Assembly (NCBI GenBank): GCA_016748015.1
Contig: JAAOMT010000402.1
Span: forward strand, 40,196 to 104,195
Origin: Geosiphon pyriformis uo1
Taxonomy: Eukaryota > Fungi > Glomeromycota
Direction of reading: 5' to 3'
Length of the DNA: 64,000 nt
The position numbers and the translations under genes are program-made. Position 1 is the first letter of the stretch; every line of letters begins with the position of its first letter. The notes under the pieces were generated by a model. The model worked only from the letters and a program-made list of their open reading frames with translations. It ran no database searches and was not told where the DNA came from. Below are positions 11,160 to 59,249 of the stretch, piece by piece.

Positions 11160-12610
11160 ATTCGGTATAAGAAACGTGGATGAAATGTGTTTGTCGATGT
11201 TTATGAATATTTTTGTTTTTCAATACACTTTCTCTTAAGTTAGGAATGAGAGTTTTTAAAAAAGTTTGGGAACGAGATAAAAATGACATCAACTTTTTTA
11301 CGATTTGGGAAATCTGATGTTTTAATCGGTTTTTATTTATCGATAAACATTTCTATTTTGATGATCATACGTTACAATCGGAATATTTGGGCATCGAACA
11401 ATGTTAATTTAAAGTTTTCCATTGTTTTGATAGACTTTTCCATGGAACAATGCCCCCGCTGTTCTGATCGGATCGAACATTAATCAGAGACTTTTTGTAA
11501 ATATTCAAGATCTTTTAACATCAAAATAATTTATATATTAATATAAAATAATAATTTTTGAAAACTTTTGTATTTTTATAAAATGTCTGAAATCAATGTC
11601 AAATGAAATAAATTTTTTTCATTTTTCTTGGACTTTGATTTTTTAAGCTTATAAACAAACTTATGACATAAACATAAAAGTTTCAAGTATCAAAGGCATT
11701 AATAACTTTCTATATAAATATATATATAACATTTCTAAAAATTTACAATAAAAACAATTCCAGCATCACAATTCAATAAATAGGTCTTCTTATCACATAC
11801 CAAGTAAAAGAGTCAATAACCTTTTTTAATTCACTAACAAAATAAATGATCATTGTTTTTAATTAAAAACTATTTGTTTTGTTGTATTATAACAAATAGG
11901 TTTTGATTCAATCCAAAAATTTTGATTTATTCCTTGATAAATGAACCAAAATATTTTGAAATTATCAAAAGGATTCTATTATCATTTAAAAGTGTACACA
12001 ATGTAAAATTTCAAGAGAATTTATTAGCAGTAAATGTCTCATTATTATTATTCAAAATGTTCGAACTTTCATTCTTTAAATTGCAAGTTAAACTGGGAAT
12101 ATTAAATTAATTGGCTTTCATTTGATTTTATCTAAAGCCAAAAAAATAAGGCTTAATACTAAGAAGCAAACAATTTAGTAGCCTTTCTATTGAATAAATG
12201 ACGGAAACCTGTATTATTCTTGAAAACACAAAATATTGTGATCCCTAAGATTTCTTTTGTTCACCAAACTCAATACTAGAAACCAAGTCAAATATAACGA
12301 CAATAAAAAATTTAGTAAACAACATTGCACTAATGCTAAATATATATAATTAAGATTCAAAATAATATCTATATACTTTGGTTGTAAATAGTTTTAATAA
12401 CTTTTCTTTTGTTTTTCATTATTAAAAGTTAAATAATCATGTAAAGAGCCTAAATTAGTATTATATTAATTTAGATAAAATTCTAAAGTTCCCCTTGAAA
12501 AAGTATAAATTAGAAGGAATGGCTATGACTTTTATAAATTTCGGTCGATAATAAATTGTTGACGGTGATGGATTGAAGAGGAGAATTATTATTGTGGATA
12601 AAATGTAACT

Positions 12611-12742
12611 TTACATAATCGAGCATTGGCCGGTACCACTACCGTCGTCTGGGTCACCGGTTGGTCCTTTAATAGACCCGTTACCCGGAGCGATAATTGA
12701 GAGGGGATTAAAGGACGATTGATTGTTGGTTGTTGGTTGCAT
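12611..12742 (-). CDS. CaaX-terminated 43-aa peptide, putative lipopeptide pheromone precursor (copy 1)
   Basis: Hand translation: MQPTTNNQSSFNPLSIIAPGNGSIKGPTGDPDDGSGTGQCSIM*. Same peptide as copies 2 and 4. Confidence 0.85.
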   Translation of the reverse strand: MQPTTNNQSSFNPLSIIAPGNGSIKGPTGDPDDGSGTGQCSIM

Positions 12743-12843
12743 TTTTTCAAATTATTTGATTTACTTTTAACGTTATTGTTTTGCTTTTTGTCTTTGTTAT
12801 TTCAGTGAGATTGAGGGAAAAGAAATTGGGAAAGCACCACCAG

Positions 12844-12850
12844 TTTTATA
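12844..12850 (-). promoter_or_regulatory. TATA box of peptide copy 1
   Basis: GCTATAAAA about 108 nt upstream of the ATG, at the same spacing in all four copies. Confidence 0.65.
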
Positions 12851-14815
12851 GCAAAACATCATAGTCTTCACGCTAAAATTAAGTATTAGAAACAATACTA
12901 AATAAATCAGAATAATAAAATGCAAAAAATGTGACTAATAATAAGTTGCGTTTATTGTTCTTTTTAATCATTATTTCGATGGATGCATTGTTAAGCTATC
13001 TCAACAATGCCCCAAATATTTAAAACAAAAAATTATTTATTTGATCATCAGTCAAAAAAGGTTGGAGATGGAGCATTATTCTTTGATATCATACCCCCTA
13101 TTTAATAAAACTATAGTACGGTAATGGTACAAATTCAGCCATTAAGGAGATTGCCTATGTGTTTATCTTTAGTTATGCATTAATTCATAAAACCGAAAAC
13201 AGGATTTTCTTAAGAACAATGCTAAAAGCATTGCTTTAATATTTGATTATTCAGTTCCTAATAATCACTTGACGCTATGTATCACTAAAATTCAAATAGA
13301 TTTCATTCTTGATAAATTAAGATTGTGTTTTTGGGAGCAAAATATCCTTATATTCCTAATTTTTTAGATGCAAATAAGAGAGTTTGCTATTTTTCTGGTG
13401 TAAAACAGCAGTCTATGAAGAAATGAATTTACCGTATTGTTCTTTGTTGGTCAAGTTTGGAAATTAATCGGAATTGATAAATTTTAATTAATTAATTAAT
13501 GTCAACTACTAACCATTTTGCTACATATGAATTTTGAGCTGAGAATACTTATACGGAAATTAATCTTGAAAATTACAAACTTTTTATTAGATCTAATTCT
13601 GTGGAACCACAGTATGTGTAAATATTTTTAAATCATTACTACCAAGTATTTGATGGTAAATTTTGCTTGTAAAATCAAGATTAAGTTTAGCAAACAGGGA
13701 AAGCCGGAGAATTGAATAGGTTTTTTCCAGTTTGGAATTTGCTAACTAGCTTAATAAACTGCAAGATGAATTGAACTATTTTTCTCAGAACAAAATCTTT
13801 AAATGAAAAAATAAATATCTTTCTATTTAAATTTAAAAATTACTCAATTATTTTGTAAATTTCAATAATTCCTATGAAATTTTTTGAGAATTTATTCAAT
13901 TCAATTTTTCTGGCTAAATCGATACTTAGTTTCCAAATTTCCAAATTTTTGGCTTTGAGCATTATTAAATAAAGGTCAATGTCACTTCAAAATCTTCTCT
14001 CTTTAAATATCTCACTTTTAAAGGTAGTAACTTTGTATTGTGATTATTTTGATCAAGCAATATTTTTGAATAAAAAATTGTTTCATAATGAAGATGCCTA
14101 TTGTAAGTTTTATTCAAATGGCTACTCTTGAAATCTTCAAACAAATTATACATAAGCTAGTAATAAAATTATTTTATTCACATCTCTTGCAAAAATATTA
14201 CATGACTATTTCCCAGTTTTAGGCAATCAGTATCGTATAAAAATTTATTTTATAACATTTTATTTGTATTGATATTAAAATCTTCGCCCAATTTTTGAAT
14301 TGGAACTAATCATAAAATAACTTTTTGTATAACCCAAAATTAAATAATTTACTGAATCAAAACACAGTATAAAAGTTTGTTTCAATCATTAAAATATTGT
14401 TTCTGCCATTTTAAGAAATTATCCTTTAATTTCAAGCCATGGTTCAAAGATATTTATAGAAGACCTGAATAACTTTCTTTATTGGTGATAAAATTTTTGA
14501 AAAAAAACTTGCTTTTTCCAAATTAGCTATTTTTTGTGCTATTTTTTATTGGTAGATTAATATTATATTATATAAAAACAAGTCATGATATAAAATTATT
14601 TAAAAATCTAGTCAAAATACATTGCCCTAAATGCTAATATATAATTAAGATTAAAACAAGGAACGAGAAATTCTCCTAATAATGTATATATTTGAAAGGT
14701 TAGGCAACTATGTAAAGAGTTTAAATTCGGCAATAAACCGGAGGTAACGGCCTTAATTCGGTTGATAGTAATTCGGTGACGGTGAGGAGGATCTTTAATG
14801 CGACTAATATCGAAT

Positions 14816-14947
14816 TTACATAATTGAGCATTGACCGGTACCGCTACCATCATCTGGATCACCGGTTGGTCCTTTAATAGAGCCATTGCCCGGAGCGATA
14901 ATTGAGAGGGGATTAAAGGAAGATTGATTATTAGTTGTTGGTTGCAT
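14816..14947 (-). CDS. CaaX-terminated 43-aa peptide, putative lipopeptide pheromone precursor (copy 2)
   Basis: MQPTTNNQSSFNPLSIIAPGNGSIKGPTGDPDDGSGTGQCSIM*; 12 nucleotide differences from copy 4, all synonymous. Confidence 0.85.
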   Translation of the reverse strand: MQPTTNNQSSFNPLSIIAPGNGSIKGPTGDPDDGSGTGQCSIM

Positions 14948-15048
14948 TTCTTCAAATTGTTTGATTTACTTTAAATGTTATTGCTTTGATTTTTTCTCTT
15001 TGTTATTTAGTTAGATTGAATGAAAAAAATTTGGGAAAGCACTCCCAA

Positions 15049-15055
15049 TTTTATA
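15049..15055 (-). promoter_or_regulatory. TATA box of peptide copy 2
   Basis: GCTATAAAA about 108 nt upstream of the ATG. Confidence 0.65.
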
Positions 15056-17402
15056 GCAAAACATCATAGCCTTCACGCTAACATCTATCATCAGAAACAA
15101 TAGTAACTTAAACACAATGTTAAAAATGCAAAATCGATAGAAAATCATAAATAATATGTTGAATTTATTGTTTTTTAGATTATTGATTGACAGATGCATT
15201 GTTAAGATATTTAAACAATGCTCAAAAGATCTAAAAAGCATATTGCGTTTCAAAATTCATTATCAATTAAAGAAGGATTAGAGAAGGCATTTTATTCATA
15301 ACATGTAATATTAAACATACATACGATACAATTCAGCCATTGAGAAGGTTTTTTACCATGTATACATTATATATTAGCTTTACATTAATTAACATGCTGA
15401 AACCAGAGTTCGAAAAACGTGATATTTTTGCAAGAGTAATGCTCAAAGCCTTGCACTAAGTTTGATTATTCAATTTTTCTACCCTATGTAAATTAAATTT
15501 GACCATTGATGATTCAAAATTCTCTTTTTGAAGCAAATATGCTTTAGATATTTCTATTTTCATTGTGTTTATTCAGAAATAAAAGATATTTCCTGTTTTC
15601 CATCTACAAATAACCATCTATAAGAAATATATATCGTCATATTTTTCTTTATCATTCAATTTTGGAATTCATTGGAATGGATAAAATTTTTTCATTCATA
15701 CGTAGTTGATGGGAATATAATATTGGACTCCAAGCAATTTTACTAATCAAGGATTGGACCAAAAAATAGCTATGCAAAAAATCAATTGATTTACTTAAAT
15801 AAATTAAAGCTTTTCATTAGATATGATTTTCAGCTGTATTTATTTTTTTAGAAATATTTATAAAGATAATTTTGCAGGCTACTCTTGTGATGATTGTTAC
15901 CATATGGCAATAATATTTCATGTTTTGTGTTTGGTCATTGATATAGGTTTGAGAATGTTCTTGCTTGAAGTTAATTTCATTTGCAAAATGAAGATTAATT
16001 ATAATAAACAGGCGAATGAGGATGTATAAATTTTTAGTTTATAAAGCTAGCATCAAATTACAAGGATAAATTGCCTTAATTTTCTGAATTTTCTGTAGGG
16101 AATCAAATAAAACTTAATAAATTGTAGTTTCAAATACCTAAAAAGGCTATGAAAATACAAACATTAGATTTTTGTTTAACAATAATAAATATAATAGATT
16201 ATTTTATATTTTAAAATAATTATTATTTATTCTTGAAAAGTAATTAAAATTTTTAATAATATACAGTTTTTTAGATATTGTTTCTAAAATTGCAAAAATT
16301 TTATTATTGGGATTGAATATATCTTCAATTTTAATCAGACTAATATTATTTTTTTATTAATCATATGATTTTGGTTGAAACTGCATTTGTTTTTAAGCCT
16401 TATTATATTGTTAATTTTCAATTTTCTGTTTCTAACAATAAATTGATAAACTTCCACATAAAATAATATATGTAAATCAATTTTAAAAGTTTTTGAGTAA
16501 ATGATTAAAAAAACTTAAATTTAGATTTGACTTCTTTGTTAATAACATAATTGTAAATTAGCACATAAATTCTAAATATTTGTTTATTATTTCATATATT
16601 ACAACCAATTTCATTATATTTTAAATCAATAATCTGTTTTTTGCGTGTTGTATCTATATGTTTTTGAAAAATCGTTTATTTGGCAACTTTTAAGATACAT
16701 TAAAGTAAGAAAAAGTAGCCAAGTATAAATGCCAATGACATTGAAAAATTTTATATTTTTTATTAATATGTATGGCATATCCAATTAGGGTGATTCAGGA
16801 AATAAATAATTCAAAACGTTTCTTTAAAACAAATTTCATAAATTGTTATTGTTACCAAGGAAACTAGAAGGCTTTTTAATTTGCATTAAAGAAATTTCAA
16901 TTCCAATCTCTAAAATATTTTTTGGTTCGGAATATTCAAAAAATACTTCTAGTCATAAATTTCAAATTCAAAGTTCTTTTATTTTTTTTCCTATCACACA
17001 AGAATAGAACAATCAATATTTTTATTATTTTCTGTAAAAAATTCTCATTAATACAAAGGTGCCGAGAATTATGAATTGGTGGACACCTGATATATAATGT
17101 ACAAATGTAAAAAACCTTCTCAATTGCGGGATTTGTACCGTATTTATGTTTAATATTATATGCTATTAAAAACTATGCCTTCTCTAATTTTTCTTTAACT
17201 GATAATCAATTTTGAAAGCTAATATGCTTTCAGATCTTTTGGGGCATTTTTTAATATCTTAAAACTGCATCTGTCAATAAATAAATGAAAGAACAATAAA
17301 TTTAACAAATTATTTGTAATTTTCTATCGAGTTTTGCTTTTTAAACTTATGATCAAGTTATTATTGTTTCTAATTTTTGATGTTAGGATTAAACTGTCTT
17401 GC

Positions 17403-17409
17403 TATAAAA
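17403..17409 (+). promoter_or_regulatory. TATA box of peptide copy 3
   Basis: GCTATAAAA 107 nt upstream of the ATG. Confidence 0.65.
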
Positions 17410-17509
17410 CTAAAAGTGCTTCCCCAATTTCTTTTCATTCAATCTAACTAAAATAACAAAGAGAAAAGCAAAACAATAACATTTAAAGTAAATCAAATAA
17501 TTTGAAGAA

Positions 17510-17641
17510 ATGCAACAAACAACCAATGATCAATCTTCCTTTAATTTTCTCTCAATTATCACTCCAGGTAATGCCTCTATTAAAGGACCAACCGGTGACC
17601 CAGACGATGGTAGCGGTACCCGTCAATGCTCAATTATGTAA
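17510..17641 (+). CDS. CaaX-terminated 43-aa peptide, variant putative pheromone precursor (copy 3)
   Basis: MQQTTNDQSSFNFLSIITPGNASIKGPTGDPDDGSGTRQCSIM*; 6 amino-acid changes versus the other copies, with length and CSIM retained. Confidence 0.8.
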   Translation: MQQTTNDQSSFNFLSIITPGNASIKGPTGDPDDGSGTRQCSIM

Positions 17642-19630
17642 AGTCAGTTATTATTGACATTAGTCATCCTCCTCACCGTTACCAAATTACTATCAACCGA
17701 GATTTGCAAAGCTTAAGGCTGTTACCTCCGTTTTATGTTGAATTTGAACCCTTTACATGATTACCTAGCCTTCAAATATACATGTCATTAGGGGAATTTC
17801 TCTTTCACTGTTTTAATCTTAATTATACATTAGCATTTAGTGCAATGTAGTTTACAATATTATTAAATAATTTTATATTATGACTTGTTTTATAAAATAT
17901 AATTAATCTACGAAATAGATATAAAATAATCCCGTATCAAACTTAATCAAAATAACACAAAAAAGATATCTACTCTGGAAAAAGGCAAATATTTTTTTCA
18001 TTAACTTTTTTTGGATTTATTAACAATAAATAAAGCTATTCAGGCTTTCTATAAATATCTTTTAACTATAGCTTGAAATTCAAAGGTATTTTCTCAATAT
18101 GGCAAAAACAATGTTTTTTTGATTGAAACAAACTTTTATACTGTGTTTTAATTTAGTATATCTATTATGTAGAATTTTTAATCGAAATTGATTTATTTAT
18201 TTTGAAGTTTTCGTAAAAAAATCTGCGGCATTTTATCATTGTAGAAAAGTTTCCTCAACAAGAAAGATAGTTTCGGTATGCGTGATAAAAGATATTGTAC
18301 AGACAAATCAAACTTGGTAGAGAAATAGACTGTTATATAGATATTGTTTACCTAAAACTAGTAAATACTCATGTAATATCTTTGCAAAAAATTTGAATAA
18401 AGTGATTCGATTACTAGCTTAGGTATAATTTTTTGAACATTTCACGAAAGAGCTATTTGAATGAAACCTACAATTGGTATCTTCTGTATGAAACCACTTT
18501 TTTTAATTTTTCAACATCAACAACATTGCATGATCAAAATAATTACAATAGAATGTTCTCACCTTTAAAGTTGAGATATTTAAAAAGAGAAGATTTTGAA
18601 ATGACACTGACCTTATTTAATAATGATCAAACCCAGAAATATAAAGATTTAAAAATTTAGTATTTACAGACTAAGAATTTAATAGGTATCATTAATATTT
18701 ACAAAATAATTAAGTAATTTTTAAATTTAACTAGAAAAATTTTCATTTATTTATTTAAAGATTTTGGACATCTATATATTTTATTTTGTTCTTAAAAAAA
18801 TAGATTAATTCATCTTTGGAATTTGCTAACTAGCTTAATAAAGAGCAAAGTGGAAAACCTATTCAATTCCTCGGCTTGCCCTGTTTACTAAGCCTAATCT
18901 TTGATATTTGCAAGCAAAATTAACCATCACAGGATCAGATCAAATGAAAAATTTAAGGTTCTCAAAATTAGCTTTCTGCACAAGTATTTGAATTAAAAAA
19001 CTTATCATTTCTGATTAATTTCTAAACTTAACTAATAAAGGACAATATGATAAATTCATTTTTTCATAGACTGGTGTTTTACACTAGGAAAATAGCAAAT
19101 CTTTTATTTTTCATCTAAAAATTAGAAATATAAGGATATTTTGCTCCCAAAAACACAATCTTAATTTATCAAGAATGAAATCTATTTGAATTTTAGTGAT
19201 ACATAGCGTCAAGTGATTATTAGGAACTGAATAATCAAATATTAAAGCAATGCTTTTAGCATTGTTCTTAAGAAAATCCTGTTTTCGGTTTTATGAATTA
19301 ATGCATAACTAAAGATAAACACATAGACAATCTCCTTAATGGCTGAATTTGTACCATTACCGTACCGTAGTTTTATTAAATAGGGGGTATGATATCAAAG
19401 AATAATGCTCCATCTCCAACCTTTTTTGACTGATGATCAAATAAATAATTTTTTGTTTTAAATATTTGGGGCATTGTTGAGATAGCTTAACAATGCATCT
19501 ATCCAAATAATGATTAAAAAGAACAATAAATGCAACCTCTTATTAGTCACATTTTTTGCATTTTATCATTCTGATTCATTTAGTATTGTTTCTAATACTT
19601 AATGTTAGCGTGAAGACTATGATGTTTTGC

Positions 19631-19637
19631 TATAAAA
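19631..19637 (+). promoter_or_regulatory. TATA box of peptide copy 4
   Basis: GCTATAAAA 108 nt upstream of the ATG. Confidence 0.65.
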
Positions 19638-19738
19638 CTGGTGGTGCTTTCCCAATTTCTTTTCCCTCAAGCTCACTGAAATAACAAAGACAAAAAGCAA
19701 AACAATAACGTTAAAAGTAAATCAAATAATTTGAAAAA

Positions 19739-19870
19739 ATGCAACCAACAACCAACAATCAATCGTCCTTTAATCCCCTCTCAATTATCGCTCCGGGTAA
19801 TGGCTCTATTAAAGGACCAACCGGTGACCCTGACGACGGTAGCGGTACTGGCCAATGCTCGATCATGTAA
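19739..19870 (+). CDS. CaaX-terminated 43-aa peptide, putative lipopeptide pheromone precursor (copy 4)
   Basis: MQPTTNNQSSFNPLSIIAPGNGSIKGPTGDPDDGSGTGQCSIM*; 6 synonymous differences from copy 1. Confidence 0.85.
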   Translation: MQPTTNNQSSFNPLSIIAPGNGSIKGPTGDPDDGSGTGQCSIM

Positions 19871-20387
19871 AGTCGAATATTATTGGCATTAGCAATTCAC
19901 CTCTCCAAATTATCATCGTCAACAATTTATTATCAGCCGAAATTTATAAAAGATATGGCCATTCCTTCTGATTTATACTTTTTCAAGAGGAACTTTAGAA
20001 TTTTATCTAAATTAATATAAAACTAAATTTAGACTTTGCACAGGATCATTTAACCTTTAATCATGAATAACAAAAGAAAAGTCATTAGGACTATTCACAG
20101 CCAAAGTGTATAGATATTATTTCGAATTTTAATTATATATTTGTATTAATGTGATGTTGTTTGCTGAATTTTTTATTGCCGTTATATTGGACTTGCTTTC
20201 TAGTAAATTGCTTAATAATACAATAAATAATTATAATAATAGAAAAAAATTATAGGCTTTTAAATATTAAACTTGTATTTGCGATAAAGATAACTCATAA
20301 TAAATTGAAATAATTGTCACTGTTTTAAACTTTTGAGATGATATCTTTCGCCATAAAACAAAAATTTTTGGTAGATTTATACACTTA

Positions 20388-21632
20388 CTGTCTTGTAAGA
20401 AAAAATTGGAAAAATATGAATCTACTAAGATTACGTTTGGTTTAACCATTTTTGGTAAGTTTTATGACAGTAAAATAGAAACAGAATATTAGGTAAGTCG
20501 CTGAGCTCTAAAAACGTATTAACTAATAGTTTTTTTTAAAACTTGTTTTTGAAATGCCGACTTCAAAGCAAGAAATGCAAAGTCGTATTACATTTTTGGA
20601 AGCAAGAAATATGAAAGGCGAAAAAAATACAGAATAAAACGAATATACCCCTTTCTACAATCTATAATATCCTCAAAAAACTCAAAAAAAAGGAACAATA
20701 AAGCATGCGAGTGGTAATGGTCAGCCAAGAAAGATTATGGGAAATTCTTTGAAAGTATTAGGGCAGATTCTTCGTAGAGATTCCTTAGTTTCGTCTAGAT
20801 ATTTAGCAATAAAGTTTACTAAGAAAAGAATAAATGTTTCTCATGTTACTATTCAAAACCCTATATCTAATCTTAATTATAAAAAAAGTCTTCCTAGAGC
20901 AACACCAATGCTGACTGAAGAGCATAAGCGAAAACGTGTAAAATGGGCCAAAAACACCTGAATTATTATTGGAAAAGAACAGTTTTTACTGATAAAACGT
21001 CTTTTCAACTTTTTCAAAACATAGTAAAATGTTGGCATAAAGGTACTCGACTAATTTGTTTTATGCCTAAAGATCAAACAAAAATTCTCGCATGGGGGGG
21101 TTTCTACGAAAAAGGAAAAACTAGTTTATTCTGTTTTGTTCAAATAATGAATGCTCAATTTTATATAGATATTCTTCGTAACCACTTACCTGAAATTAGA
21201 GCAATGCTGGGGGATAATTGGCGATTCCAACAAGATAATAACCGCAAGAATACTAGCAAGCTTGCCAAAGAGTTTATTACTGAGAATACAACTGATTTGT
21301 TGGGGTGGCCATCTAATAGTCCCGACTTAAACCCAATAGAAACCTTTGAGCTATTGTTAAAAAGAATGTAGAAAAAAGAATGTGTTAAAATCGTAGTGAA
21401 TTAGAGAGATTTATTGGGGAAGAGTGGCAAGATATTTCTGAATCTATCTTAATTGGGTTAGTAGGATCAATAAGTGAAATGATAATTGAGACAAATGGTG
21501 AAAGAATTTCCTATTAATTTTTTTTAATAAAATTATAATGGTATTTGACTTTCTAATAAAAGTTGTAATTTGGTACATTAGTTAAGACATAGTGATTATT
21601 TTTATATTTCCGATTTTTTTTTTACCAGACTG
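20388..21632 (+). mobile_element. Tc1/IS630-family DNA transposon (DD34E), degenerate
   Basis: Transposase fragments TVFTDKT, QQDNNRKNT and WPSNSPDLNPIE with 34 residues between D and E; frameshifts; degenerate TIRs TA-CTGTCTTGTAAGAAAAAATTGG and CCGATTTTTTTTTTACCAGACTG-TA with TA on both sides. Confidence 0.88.
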
Positions 21633-39490: not shown

Positions 39491-41740
39491 ATGTCTTCAA
39501 CTTCATCAATTGAAAACGCAACTTCACTCCTTGACTGGCTTGAAGGAGCATTGATTGTCATCAAAGAACATTTGGCCATTATCCCAGTTAGTGAATGTTC
39601 AAAAGTTGCCAACTTTGTGAAAATATATCTTGAGCATAATCAGGAAACACCTGAAGACTTATTCAGAAAGCAGCGAATGCAGAAGATTCTTTTAGACAAT
39701 TATTTTTAGGACGTTGTTACAATCATGGACTTGGTACTTCACAAGATCGAGGAAAAGCATTTGAGCTATATTCAAAAGCAACAATGGGGGGTAATACAAA
39801 TGCACAATTGAATCTTAGACTTTGTTATCAATATGGATGGGAACAACAAAAGATTCAGAAAAAGCATTTGAACTCTATTCAAAAGTAGCAGAAGCGGGAC
39901 ATGCAAATGTACAATACAATCTTGGAAACTGTTATCAATATGGATGGGGAACGACGAAAAATGAGGGAAAAGAATTTGAACTCTATTCAAAAGCAGCAGA
40001 GGCAGGAAGTTAACTTGGACATATCGCTCTTGGAGAATATTATCTAAATGAACTAGAAACGATAAAAGATCCGCAAAATGGATGGGAAATAGTGAAAAAT
40101 CTGGATGAAACGTTTCAATTCTTTTTAAAAACAGCAGAGGCGGGAAATTAAAATACACAATATAACCTTGGATGGGGTTATCAAAGTGGATGGGGAACCA
40201 CAAGAAACCTAGAAAAAGCCTTTGAACTCTATTTAAAAGCAGCAGGAGCAAATAAATTTTGTTTTCAAAGTGATTTTCCTGATTTGAATGTCCATGACCT
40301 TACTTTAGTGGATCAAAACAATCTGGAATATAACCTTTTACGATTCCAAAATCGAGGTTTTAAATATCCAGATAATTTGCAAGGAGAATTTTTAAATTTT
40401 GAAGCTTTCTTTGACCAGCTCTCGGATGAATTCAAGTGTTTTAAATGTGACAACTTGAGTATAATCATTAATGGATCTGCTATATGTCCATTTTGTGATA
40501 CTGATAAAACTGATGATACCTTTAAAGCCGGATTGCCGAAATATCTAGAATGCTATAGAGCATTAAAAGATCCACTTTGGTGTGAATCTTGTGAATCATC
40601 GCGATTTTCACGGATTTGGGACACATGGAAAAGTGGAAATGAAAATATTGATCAGTATATACTATACACACAGCGAAATTCTGAAAACTGCAGAGGCTGT
40701 CTGGAATTGATTTTTCCCGATGAGATTATATATTTAGATAAAGTGGGAGAGGGAGGATTTGGTATTGTCGGTGGGAGAGAGGCAGAATTCTATTTTCGGG
40801 ATAAGAAAAATCAAAAGCATGAAGGAAGCGGGGTTACAAAAGTTACTTTAAAATGCCTTAAAGACAAATAAAACATACAATATATCAATTCAAATGAGGT
40901 ATCTATCTTTAAGAATCTATGTAGTTTTTATTATACTCATTTCTTCACTAAAATCAAGAAATTTATTGAATAGTTTATTCCGCATCTTAGGAGTGCCTCT
41001 TGCAAATACATCCTTGAATGCTATGGAATCACAAAAGATGTTACAACTAATGAATTCGTTATGGTTTTACCATTTGCAGAACATGGGGACCTTAGAGCTT
41101 TTCTAAAGATGAACAAGGATACTTTTACTTGGGATATGTTTCTTCGAATTCTTTTTCAAATTGTTAGTGGCCTAAGGTTTATGCATGATTCAGAACTAGT
41201 GCATGGGGACATGCATCCTGGCAATATCCTTGTTTCGAAATCAAATCCCTTAAAAGTGGCCATTGCTGACCTAGGATTCTGTAGTCCTGCCAATTTCTCT
41301 ACACAACCTAACGAGATCTTTGGCGTTGTTGAATACTCAGCGCCTGAAGTTTGTAACTTGTCGTCTCATACCAAATACAGCGATATTTATAGTTGTGCTA
41401 ACATTTCCTGGGAAATTATTTCAGGAGAAAGACCGTGGAATGATGTTAAAAATTTTATGTACATTCAAATAGACATAGTTCAGGGAAAGCACCCCATAAT
41501 CGAGAAGCGTACGCCTCAATGTATTCAGGAAATGATTGAAAAGAATTGGGATCAGAATCTATATTGCCGTGATACTGCAGAAGAACTTCAACAAAAAGTT
41601 ATTTGCTGCTCGTGACGATTGCAACTTAAACAAACTTGTCCGTGAAAAAAGACTTAATTTCGAAGAGACACAAGATGCTACCCGAGATACAACAAGATAT
41701 AGAAGCCAATTAATCTCAAAACCTACATTTTCTATGGGTA
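39491..41740 (+). pseudogene. Sel1-repeat + TKL kinase pseudogene (paralog of 24826-27013)
   Basis: Same layout and intron positions; HGDMHPGN, ADLG, YSAPE; frameshifts and stops in the Sel1 and glycine-loop regions. Confidence 0.85.
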
Positions 41741-58186: not shown

Positions 58187-59115
58187 GTGAAATTTTTCAT
58201 GCTAGAGACCCTTTTAGATCAAACCTCTTCAGAACTATGGGAAAAGTTTGAACAGTGGGCAGGTTTTGAAAAAACTAAAAATTTCGACATCATTGCTATC
58301 ACTTATGAAGAAAAAAACAAAGCACGCGTACGAACTACATATAGAAGCCCAAAAAAGTCCTATGGAACTTTATGATATCCTAAATGTGTTCCTATGCCAT
58401 CTGAATGATAAAATTTTTATAGTGAATGAAACAACTAAGAAGGTTGCGATTGACGTCCATCTAGACGGTTACAAGTATATTTCTAAACCTAGGTGTTTTA
58501 AAAATGCAATCAGTGAAACAATGATAGATTTCTTCGACCTCAACAGCCACCTGGTCGTAAAGACTGCATGGGTGATAGTAGATCAATATTATAAACACAA
58601 CCTTAGTGAGCCTTCTCATTGATCTAACCAATTCATCAAAAATTTAATAGAACATTTCAGTTGTTTTACTGATAATAACAATATACCATATGTCATTTCG
58701 AATATTGCTTTTACACATTCCCAGGAGCATCGTAAGTGTGTTCAGGATTTGATCCGAGGACTTCAGTCACTTTCCGACGCAGTAAACAATTATATTAACA
58801 ACGCATATCCAGCATTATACGCTAAAATGAAAAAACTCAACTTACGTCTTAACACTCCTAAATTTTTTGGAGCCTTCCCCACTATTAGTATTAACTTTAA
58901 TAGCATCTGCCAATTTCATCGAGATCTAAAAGATCATCGTAATACACTCTGTATCGTCTGCCCTCTCAGAAGGTTTGAGGGTGGGCATCTAACATTTCCT
59001 GAACTAAAGTTGGCAGTTATGGTGAAGCAAGGGAAAATGAATAAAGCGGGATATAGCGATTCGTCTTCGGCTAGGAAATTAAAAATTTTTTCTAGGTATT
59101 CAGGCCATAGTAAAT
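58187..59115 (+). pseudogene. TET/JBP-like 2-oxoglutarate/Fe(II) dioxygenase, disrupted and 3'-truncated
   Basis: FGAFPTISINFNSICQFHRDLKD…CPL..FEGGHLTFPELKL..VKQG (HxD motif); in-frame TGA at 58620-58622; distal His not found. Confidence 0.7.
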
Positions 59116-59249
59116 AGAGTATATAACGAGGTAATAAAAAATACTTATCTTTAATTTGGGGAGGCTTAGCCTCGTTGCTCCGCAACCCCGAAATNNNNNN
59201 NNNNNNNNNNNNNNTTTATGTTTATTCATCGTATTCAACAAAATTTTTG

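Follow-up and report, generated by a model that had tools for sequence, protein, structure and literature searches.

How members of the Glomeromycota might signal to a mating or fusion partner is a question raised by a locus in Geosiphon pyriformis uo1, in which four short open reading frames (ORFs) each end in a CaaX box followed directly by a stop codon. The ORFs lie in a 64,000-nucleotide (nt) stretch of contig JAAOMT010000402.1 (assembly GCA_016748015.1, forward strand, positions 40,196 to 104,195), hereafter the window, in which all positions are counted from the first letter. Glomeromycota retain meiosis genes, a MAT-like locus, and a STE3 receptor, and to our knowledge a sexual cycle has never been seen in this group. 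In Rhizophagus/Glomus, a single-copy STE3 and a STE6 orthologue were reported together with 'no peptide pheromone coding genes' (Halary et al. 2013, PMC3834313), and our literature search found no description of the CaaX peptide family treated here.

This paper describes the four ORFs, their relatives in the same genome and in the genus Ambispora, their promoters, and the receptor and processing genes that accompany them. A sequence-only reading of the window had recognized a Glomeromycota-like host, correctly so, and had proposed that the ORFs encode a farnesylated, a-factor-type pheromone. Selection on the peptide, conservation of its cysteine and stop position, a putative processing site at an asparagine, and the presence of STE3 speak for that proposal, and none of the outcomes named beforehand as refuting it was encountered; on the other side, the function is deduced, Ste23/Axl1 was not detected, and no STE6 could be assigned. 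On balance, the ORFs are probably precursor genes of a farnesylated, exported, a-factor-type lipopeptide ligand for Ste3.

The four genes and the selection acting on them

The four predicted ORFs of 132 nt, encoding 43 amino acids (aa) and ending in CSIM-stop, are present at exactly the positions claimed for them: 12611-12742 (copy 1, minus strand), 14816-14947 (copy 2, minus strand), 17510-17641 (copy 3, plus strand), and 19739-19870 (copy 4, plus strand). The precursor is thus shorter than 100 aa, has no signal peptide, and carries a CaaX box immediately before the stop. The region predicted to form the mature peptide spans 12623-12679 in copy 1 and 19802-19858 in copy 4, with the CaaX box at 12614-12625 and 19856-19867, respectively. 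Copies 1, 2, and 4 encode the same peptide, which is also that of the family majority, and the reported counts of synonymous differences were reproduced (12 between copies 2 and 4, and 6 between copies 1 and 4), with a further 12 between copies 1 and 2; every one of these is a synonymous third-position difference. On the three-way tree of these copies all 15 independent changes are synonymous, for which P is ~4e-10 under neutrality (24% of sites being synonymous). Copy 3 diverges from the other copies by six amino-acid changes, two of them in the predicted mature region; because its own branch carries ~7 non-synonymous to ~2 synonymous changes, which is the neutral ratio, this copy is probably under relaxed selection and decaying.

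The proposed pheromone locus is indeed a cluster of four copies, but the family is not limited to it, as the Geosiphon genome contains 33 intact copies over 12 contigs in addition to about five decayed ones. The window peptide is encoded exactly by 24 of the 33, and 29 distinct coding sequences (CDS) are found among them, a few identical pairs being possible assembly duplicates. Mean pS over the 33 copies is 0.385 and mean pN 0.017 (ratio 0.044), which extends the proposed purifying selection from the window to the family. No indel was found in the CDS, whereas pairwise indels number about 2,000 in each 130-nt flank, and a length that is not a multiple of three is found in three quarters of them. 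Residues 21-43 are invariant in 31 of the 33 copies despite 21 synonymous alleles, and all 5 variant residues lie within residues 1-20. By these substitution and indel patterns, the copies are genuine protein-coding genes that lack introns and are subject to strong purifying selection. In a tree the copies group largely by contig, which fits local duplication; a unit about 1 kb long has been amplified to approximately 33 copies through tandem and inverted duplications. Such a number of copies would most simply serve dosage.

Homologues in Ambispora

Homologues were sought among annotated proteins by a scan of 1.84 billion sequences and by a profile search, and relatives were found only in Ambispora leptoticha and A. 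gerdemannii. The DNA of these fungi contains six ORFs of 39-43 aa that are 59-74% identical to the Geosiphon peptide and end in CVIM, CVIV, or CIIW followed by a stop. Conservation of the cysteine and of the stop position in homologues had been set beforehand as a test of the pheromone proposal, and both are kept in all six. Common to the two genera are Asn21, Gly26-Pro27-Thr28, Gln39, Cys40, and the CaaX-stop end, with Asn21 invariant in the 33 Geosiphon and 6 Ambispora copies. The spacing from this asparagine to the cysteine is 19 residues in all copies but one and is kept in five of the six Ambispora homologues; the one-codon indel between the genera sits just upstream of Asn21. The Cys-proximal half varies between species and between both A. 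gerdemannii copies, a pattern to be expected if it determines specificity. Among the intact Geosiphon copies, the one at L026:1500-1628 (contig C704) diverges most, with 8 changes; several of its residues recur in the Ambispora peptides, and it could represent an earlier variant or another specificity.

Searches elsewhere gave no further relatives. The peptide had no match in Pfam, the ESM Atlas, or a scan of bacterial genomes, and metagenome scans returned first nothing and later a single match, within a bacterial ATPase-like ORF, that was put down to chance. Three long matches (P0013, P0017, and P0020) were driven by repeats and are unrelated to the family. Synteny was likewise dismissed: one Geosiphon and one Ambispora copy precede a gene for an Ig-like membrane protein of the same family, and that family has dozens of loci.

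Promoters of the peptide genes

In nearly all Geosiphon copies a TATA box lies 103-147 nt before the ATG, accompanied by several AACAAT/ATTGTT sites and by a palindromic pair of such sites ~220-270 nt upstream. In the window, the copy 1 promoter (12844-13008, minus strand) has its TATA box at 12844-12850, sites at 12891 and 12954, and the inverted pair at 12987-13008; that of copy 2 (15049-15219, minus strand) has a TATA box at 15049-15055, sites at 15096 and 15167, and the pair at 15198-15219. On the plus strand, the copy 4 promoter (19473-19637) consists of the inverted pair at 19473-19494, sites at 19522 and 19585, and a TATA box at 19631-19637, and the copy 3 promoter (17292-17409) retains two sites only (17292 and 17363), without the palindromic pair, ahead of a TATA box at 17403-17409.

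Site density in the Geosiphon promoters is 3.5 per 200 nt, compared to 0.34 in shuffled sequence and in the rest of the window. These copies share descent, whereas the six Ambispora promoters are much more diverged, and the latter hold 16 sites against 2.4 expected, a number reached by none of 2,000 shuffles. Enrichment is thus 7-10 times in both genera. AACAAT/ATTGTT is the core bound by HMG boxes of the SOX/MATA type, and an HMG protein may bind the promoters of the peptide genes. No Ste12 site (TGAAACA) was found in any of the 33 Geosiphon promoters. Co-regulation with receptor or exporter genes was considered and rejected, the STE3 promoter being devoid of sites and those of the ABCB genes being at background level. 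A separate dispersed repeat bears a similar palindromic ATTGTT...AACAATG at dozens of places (for instance C136:155600, C340:217980, and C424:228892), and the paired site therefore does not define a regulon.

Receptor, processing, and export genes

Several of the genes that the sequence-only reading had listed for a check were recovered. The genome encodes one STE3 receptor, on contig C642, which when read exon by exon has three exons with intact frames; the exon search gave one exon-sized match at 50% identity. STE2 had no match in the genome, in a search in which no positive control responded. Further matches comprise an ICMT (Ste14-type), a Ste24-type protease, three prenyltransferase beta loci, and three G-alpha loci. 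The check for STE6 succeeded in part, as several full-size ABCB genes are present, of which none is assignable as the STE6 orthologue; assignment by Protein Data Bank scores and the Atlas was abandoned, as the scores failed to discriminate among the ABCB genes. That for AXL1/Ste23 failed, and by the same profile approach Rce1 had no match in the genome either; four other M16 loci were found.

On the STE3 contig, a tandem array starts about 5 kb downstream of the receptor gene; it consists of three HMG-box genes that exceed the Pfam cut-off and one further ORF of similar kind (L041:7896-9080, L043:281-883, L043:1969-3078, and L043:5176-6423). This proximity may be due to chance, since the HMG family is much expanded in these fungi. 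Two genes of the S9A prolyl-oligopeptidase type were also noted, at C642:112.4-114.5 kb and at C348:105.2-107.3 kb, the latter with a full-size ABCB gene at a distance of about 18 kb.

Comparison with known pheromone systems

In a published definition, candidate a-factors have fewer than 100 aa, a CaaX-stop end, an Asn located 5-20 residues ahead of the Cys, and conservation in multiple copies (Srikant et al., bioRxiv 10.1101/2021.09.28.462209), and all four features are found in the Geosiphon/Ambispora family. The S. cerevisiae a-factor (MFA1/MFA2) and its counterparts in Saccharomycotina are alike in the short cytosolic precursor, the CaaX-stop, the position of the Asn, the occurrence of several copies, and the conservation among related species. 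Yeast Mfa1 is cleaved between N21 and Y22 (PMC2134810), and the invariant Asn of Geosiphon is also residue 21. Five of the 10 residues after Asn21 match mature yeast a-factor in register (IKG, DP), a match that was not accepted as homology (P is ~3e-4 for a single comparison and ~0.02 over some fifty known pheromones); no copy matches Pfam MFA1_2 (PF17317) at E-values up to 10. The predicted mature region of Geosiphon has 19 residues and is hydrophilic, unlike the 12 hydrophobic residues of yeast, its pro-region is conserved, and it is encoded by about 33 copies compared to 1-19 yeast candidates. Also unlike the yeast system, Geosiphon has no detected STE2/alpha-factor side, Ste23/Axl1, or Ste12 site.

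The M-factor genes of S. pombe (mfm1-3) are similarly multicopy CaaX precursor genes, and their promoters contain ACAAT M-boxes 130-190 nt upstream of the start, which are bound by the HMG protein Mat1-Mc (PMC1693924). They differ in having introns and a Ste11 box (AACAAAG), whereas Geosiphon has AACAAT/ATTGTT sites only, including the palindromic pair. Basidiomycete pheromones (Ustilago mfa1/2, Cryptococcus MFalpha, tremerogens, and rhodotorucine A) resemble the Geosiphon peptide in belonging to a Ste3-only system and in their farnesylation, which in Geosiphon is predicted. The mature basidiomycete peptides are polar and rich in Gly, Pro, Asp, and Asn, a further likeness. In basidiomycetes, however, the pheromone genes are linked to STE3 in a P/R locus with mating-type alleles, in contrast to Geosiphon, where no copy lies on the STE3 contig.

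Weighing of the a-factor-type reading

If the ORFs encode a lipopeptide signal, the precursor would be made in the cytosol, there being no signal peptide; a farnesyltransferase would modify Cys40 of the CSIM end, a CaaX protease would take off SIM, and Ste14 would methylate the cysteine. The N-terminal part would be trimmed, most likely after Asn21, to yield a 19-residue farnesyl peptide (residues 22-40) that an ABCB (Ste6-like) pump would export. On a neighbouring hypha, the peptide would bind the single Ste3 G-protein-coupled receptor, which would drive signalling through G protein and mitogen-activated protein kinases, leading to partner recognition and fusion. On every applicable test the peptide would work as an a-factor precursor, while belonging neither to the yeast sequence family nor to a P/R locus; it departs from the known systems in the number of copies, in how well the pro-region is conserved, and perhaps in its processing.

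A number of observations weigh against this reading. Conservation of the pro-region greatly exceeds what a disposable spacer would need, and the predicted mature peptide, with a GRAVY of -1.0, is hydrophilic as well as long. No peptide-gene copy lies on the STE3 contig or in the 38 kb around STE3, and no AACAAT/ATTGTT site occurs within 1 kb in the STE3 promoter. Among the ABCB genes, none gives a closer score for the solved a-factor exporter than for ABCB1, and most of the processing genes that were found are eukaryotic housekeeping genes and lend little weight as support. The insulinase-type protease Ste23/Axl1 had no match in the genome with PF16187, PF22456, or NF011681; because Rce1 was missed too, low sensitivity on intron-rich genes may explain this negative, and the absence, if real, would be an unusual gene loss. 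Finally, annotated-protein searches found no homologue in Rhizophagus and other orders, which is not proof of absence given this scope and the fast divergence of such peptides.

Alternative explanations

One alternative is a prenylated micro-protein that is retained on an internal or the plasma membrane and acts whole, as a structural component, regulator, or decoy substrate, and is never exported. Conservation of the entire 43-mer, including the hydrophobic stretch at residues 11-19, and the missing Ste23/Axl1 would suit such a protein. Nevertheless, the residues that vary within Geosiphon all lie in 1-20, both genera preserve the distance from Asn to Cys, and ahead of the CaaX box there is no further signal for membrane targeting, be it a polybasic run or another Cys. 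Dozens of copies and HMG-type promoters are also in keeping with a signal produced in quantity, and membrane retention is judged rather unlikely.

An exported lipopeptide could also address another organism, such as the Nostoc partner, plants, or bacteria, or a receptor other than Ste3. Geosiphon must attract and engulf Nostoc, and both the extreme copy number and the lack of linkage to STE3 could be read in this light. The family is not tied to Nostoc, however, as several copies occur in the plant symbiont Ambispora; furthermore, the role known for short CaaX peptides in fungi is to act on Ste3, and the genome has an orphan STE3. That the signal addresses a different organism or receptor is accordingly judged quite unlikely.

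Very unlikely is a third explanation, in which a prolyl oligopeptidase would excise residues 14-19 as a cyclic hexapeptide, and the CaaX tail would serve only to tether the precursor. The resemblance is to the MSDIN precursors of Amanita and Galerina, which are encoded by dozens of short genes and have a Pro-flanked hydrophobic core and an acidic follower with a C-terminal Cys, as in the Geosiphon family. Nearly all copies have a hydrophobic hexapeptide with Pro13 and Pro19 as its flanks, the core is different in each of the six Ambispora copies and contains three of the five variant residues of typical Geosiphon copies, and the genome has the two S9A-type peptidase genes. MSDIN cores are hypervariable, whereas the changes in the present core are conservative only and 24 of the 33 Geosiphon copies are identical. 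MSDIN genes also have introns and are accompanied by a dedicated POPB, and their precursors stop at the Cys or directly beside it, with no aaX, unlike the full CaaX end found here. The MSDIN leader is absent from the Geosiphon peptides, neither S9A gene lies on a precursor-bearing contig, the clusters are without enzyme genes, and no part of the peptide is more constrained than the tail that follows the core.

The ORFs might instead be first exons of longer spliced genes, as in the NCBI models, with the CaaX-stop a by-product of the splice donor, since the junction of Met codon and stop yields GT in every copy. All annotated models that were found do splice out of the ORF. The description of the genes as unannotated holds only in part: copies 2 and 4 start models G9A89_004937 and G9A89_004938, from which the CaaX end is spliced away. 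The models exit at five different positions (after residue 33, 34, 37, 42, or 43), and the tails that they join are for the most part unrelated; G9A89_004937 requires a 32-nt intron, and G9A89_004938 joins copy 4 to a Tc1 transposase remnant about 1 kb away. The downstream DNA is full of frame-breaking indels, and codons 39-43 show only synonymous variation within Geosiphon and CaaX-compatible swaps between the genera. Splicing of this kind is highly improbable, and the NCBI models are taken as prediction artefacts; mis-spliced annotation would also explain why the family has gone unnoticed. The last possibility, that the copies are a neutral repeat or passengers of a mobile element, might be suggested by their dispersal on 12 contigs and by the Tc1/DDE remnant 900 nt downstream of copy 4, but is effectively refuted by the codon pattern (pN/pS 0.04, P ~4e-10 from the window copies alone), together with conservation in a second genus and of the promoter elements.

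Organization of the locus

The four window copies form an 8-kb palindrome. Its left arm (12274-15390) consists of the copy 1 unit, a spacer, and the copy 2 unit, and is mirrored by the right arm (17074-20205) with the copy 3 unit, a spacer, and the copy 4 unit. The arms are separated by 1683 nt, and all four ORFs are transcribed outwards. Identity between the arms is 92% for the outer units (copies 1 and 4), 74% for the middle, and 80% for the inner units (copies 2 and 3); from this layout, the palindrome is an inverted duplication of a tandem pair. On the same contig, an intact fifth copy lies 6 kb to the left of the window start (C551:34214-34342) and a frameshifted one 0.4 kb to its left (C551, ~39720-39850).

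The neighbouring genes in the window are typical of this group of fungi and include kinases, a class 3 lipase, kelch and Sel1 genes, and the Tc1 remnant. The latter is a broken Tc1/mariner transposase at 20737-21371, with HTH_Tnp_Tc3_2 and DDE_3 in separate frames. At 58248-59117, fragmented ORFs give a weak, sub-cut-off match to Tet/JBP dioxygenases, a family that is frequent cargo of fungal transposons.

Implications for the Glomeromycota

Chances are about even for the wider proposal that this family is the natural Ste3 ligand of the Glomeromycota, controlled by MATA-HMG proteins and matured without Axl1/Ste23, and is the first peptide pheromone outside Dikarya. If this is true, the lipopeptide/Ste3 system would date back at least to the common ancestor of Glomeromycota and Dikarya, and the peptide would offer a chemical means of studying cryptic sex or the fusion of hyphae in arbuscular mycorrhizal fungi. 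As a short candidate ligand that can be synthesized, it makes mate signalling directly assayable on hyphae or on a yeast-expressed receptor. Moreover, the combination of Asn, CaaX, HMG-type promoter, and multiple copies provides a recipe for finding equivalents in Rhizophagus and other crop symbionts, in which such short ORFs may have been missed or mis-spliced.

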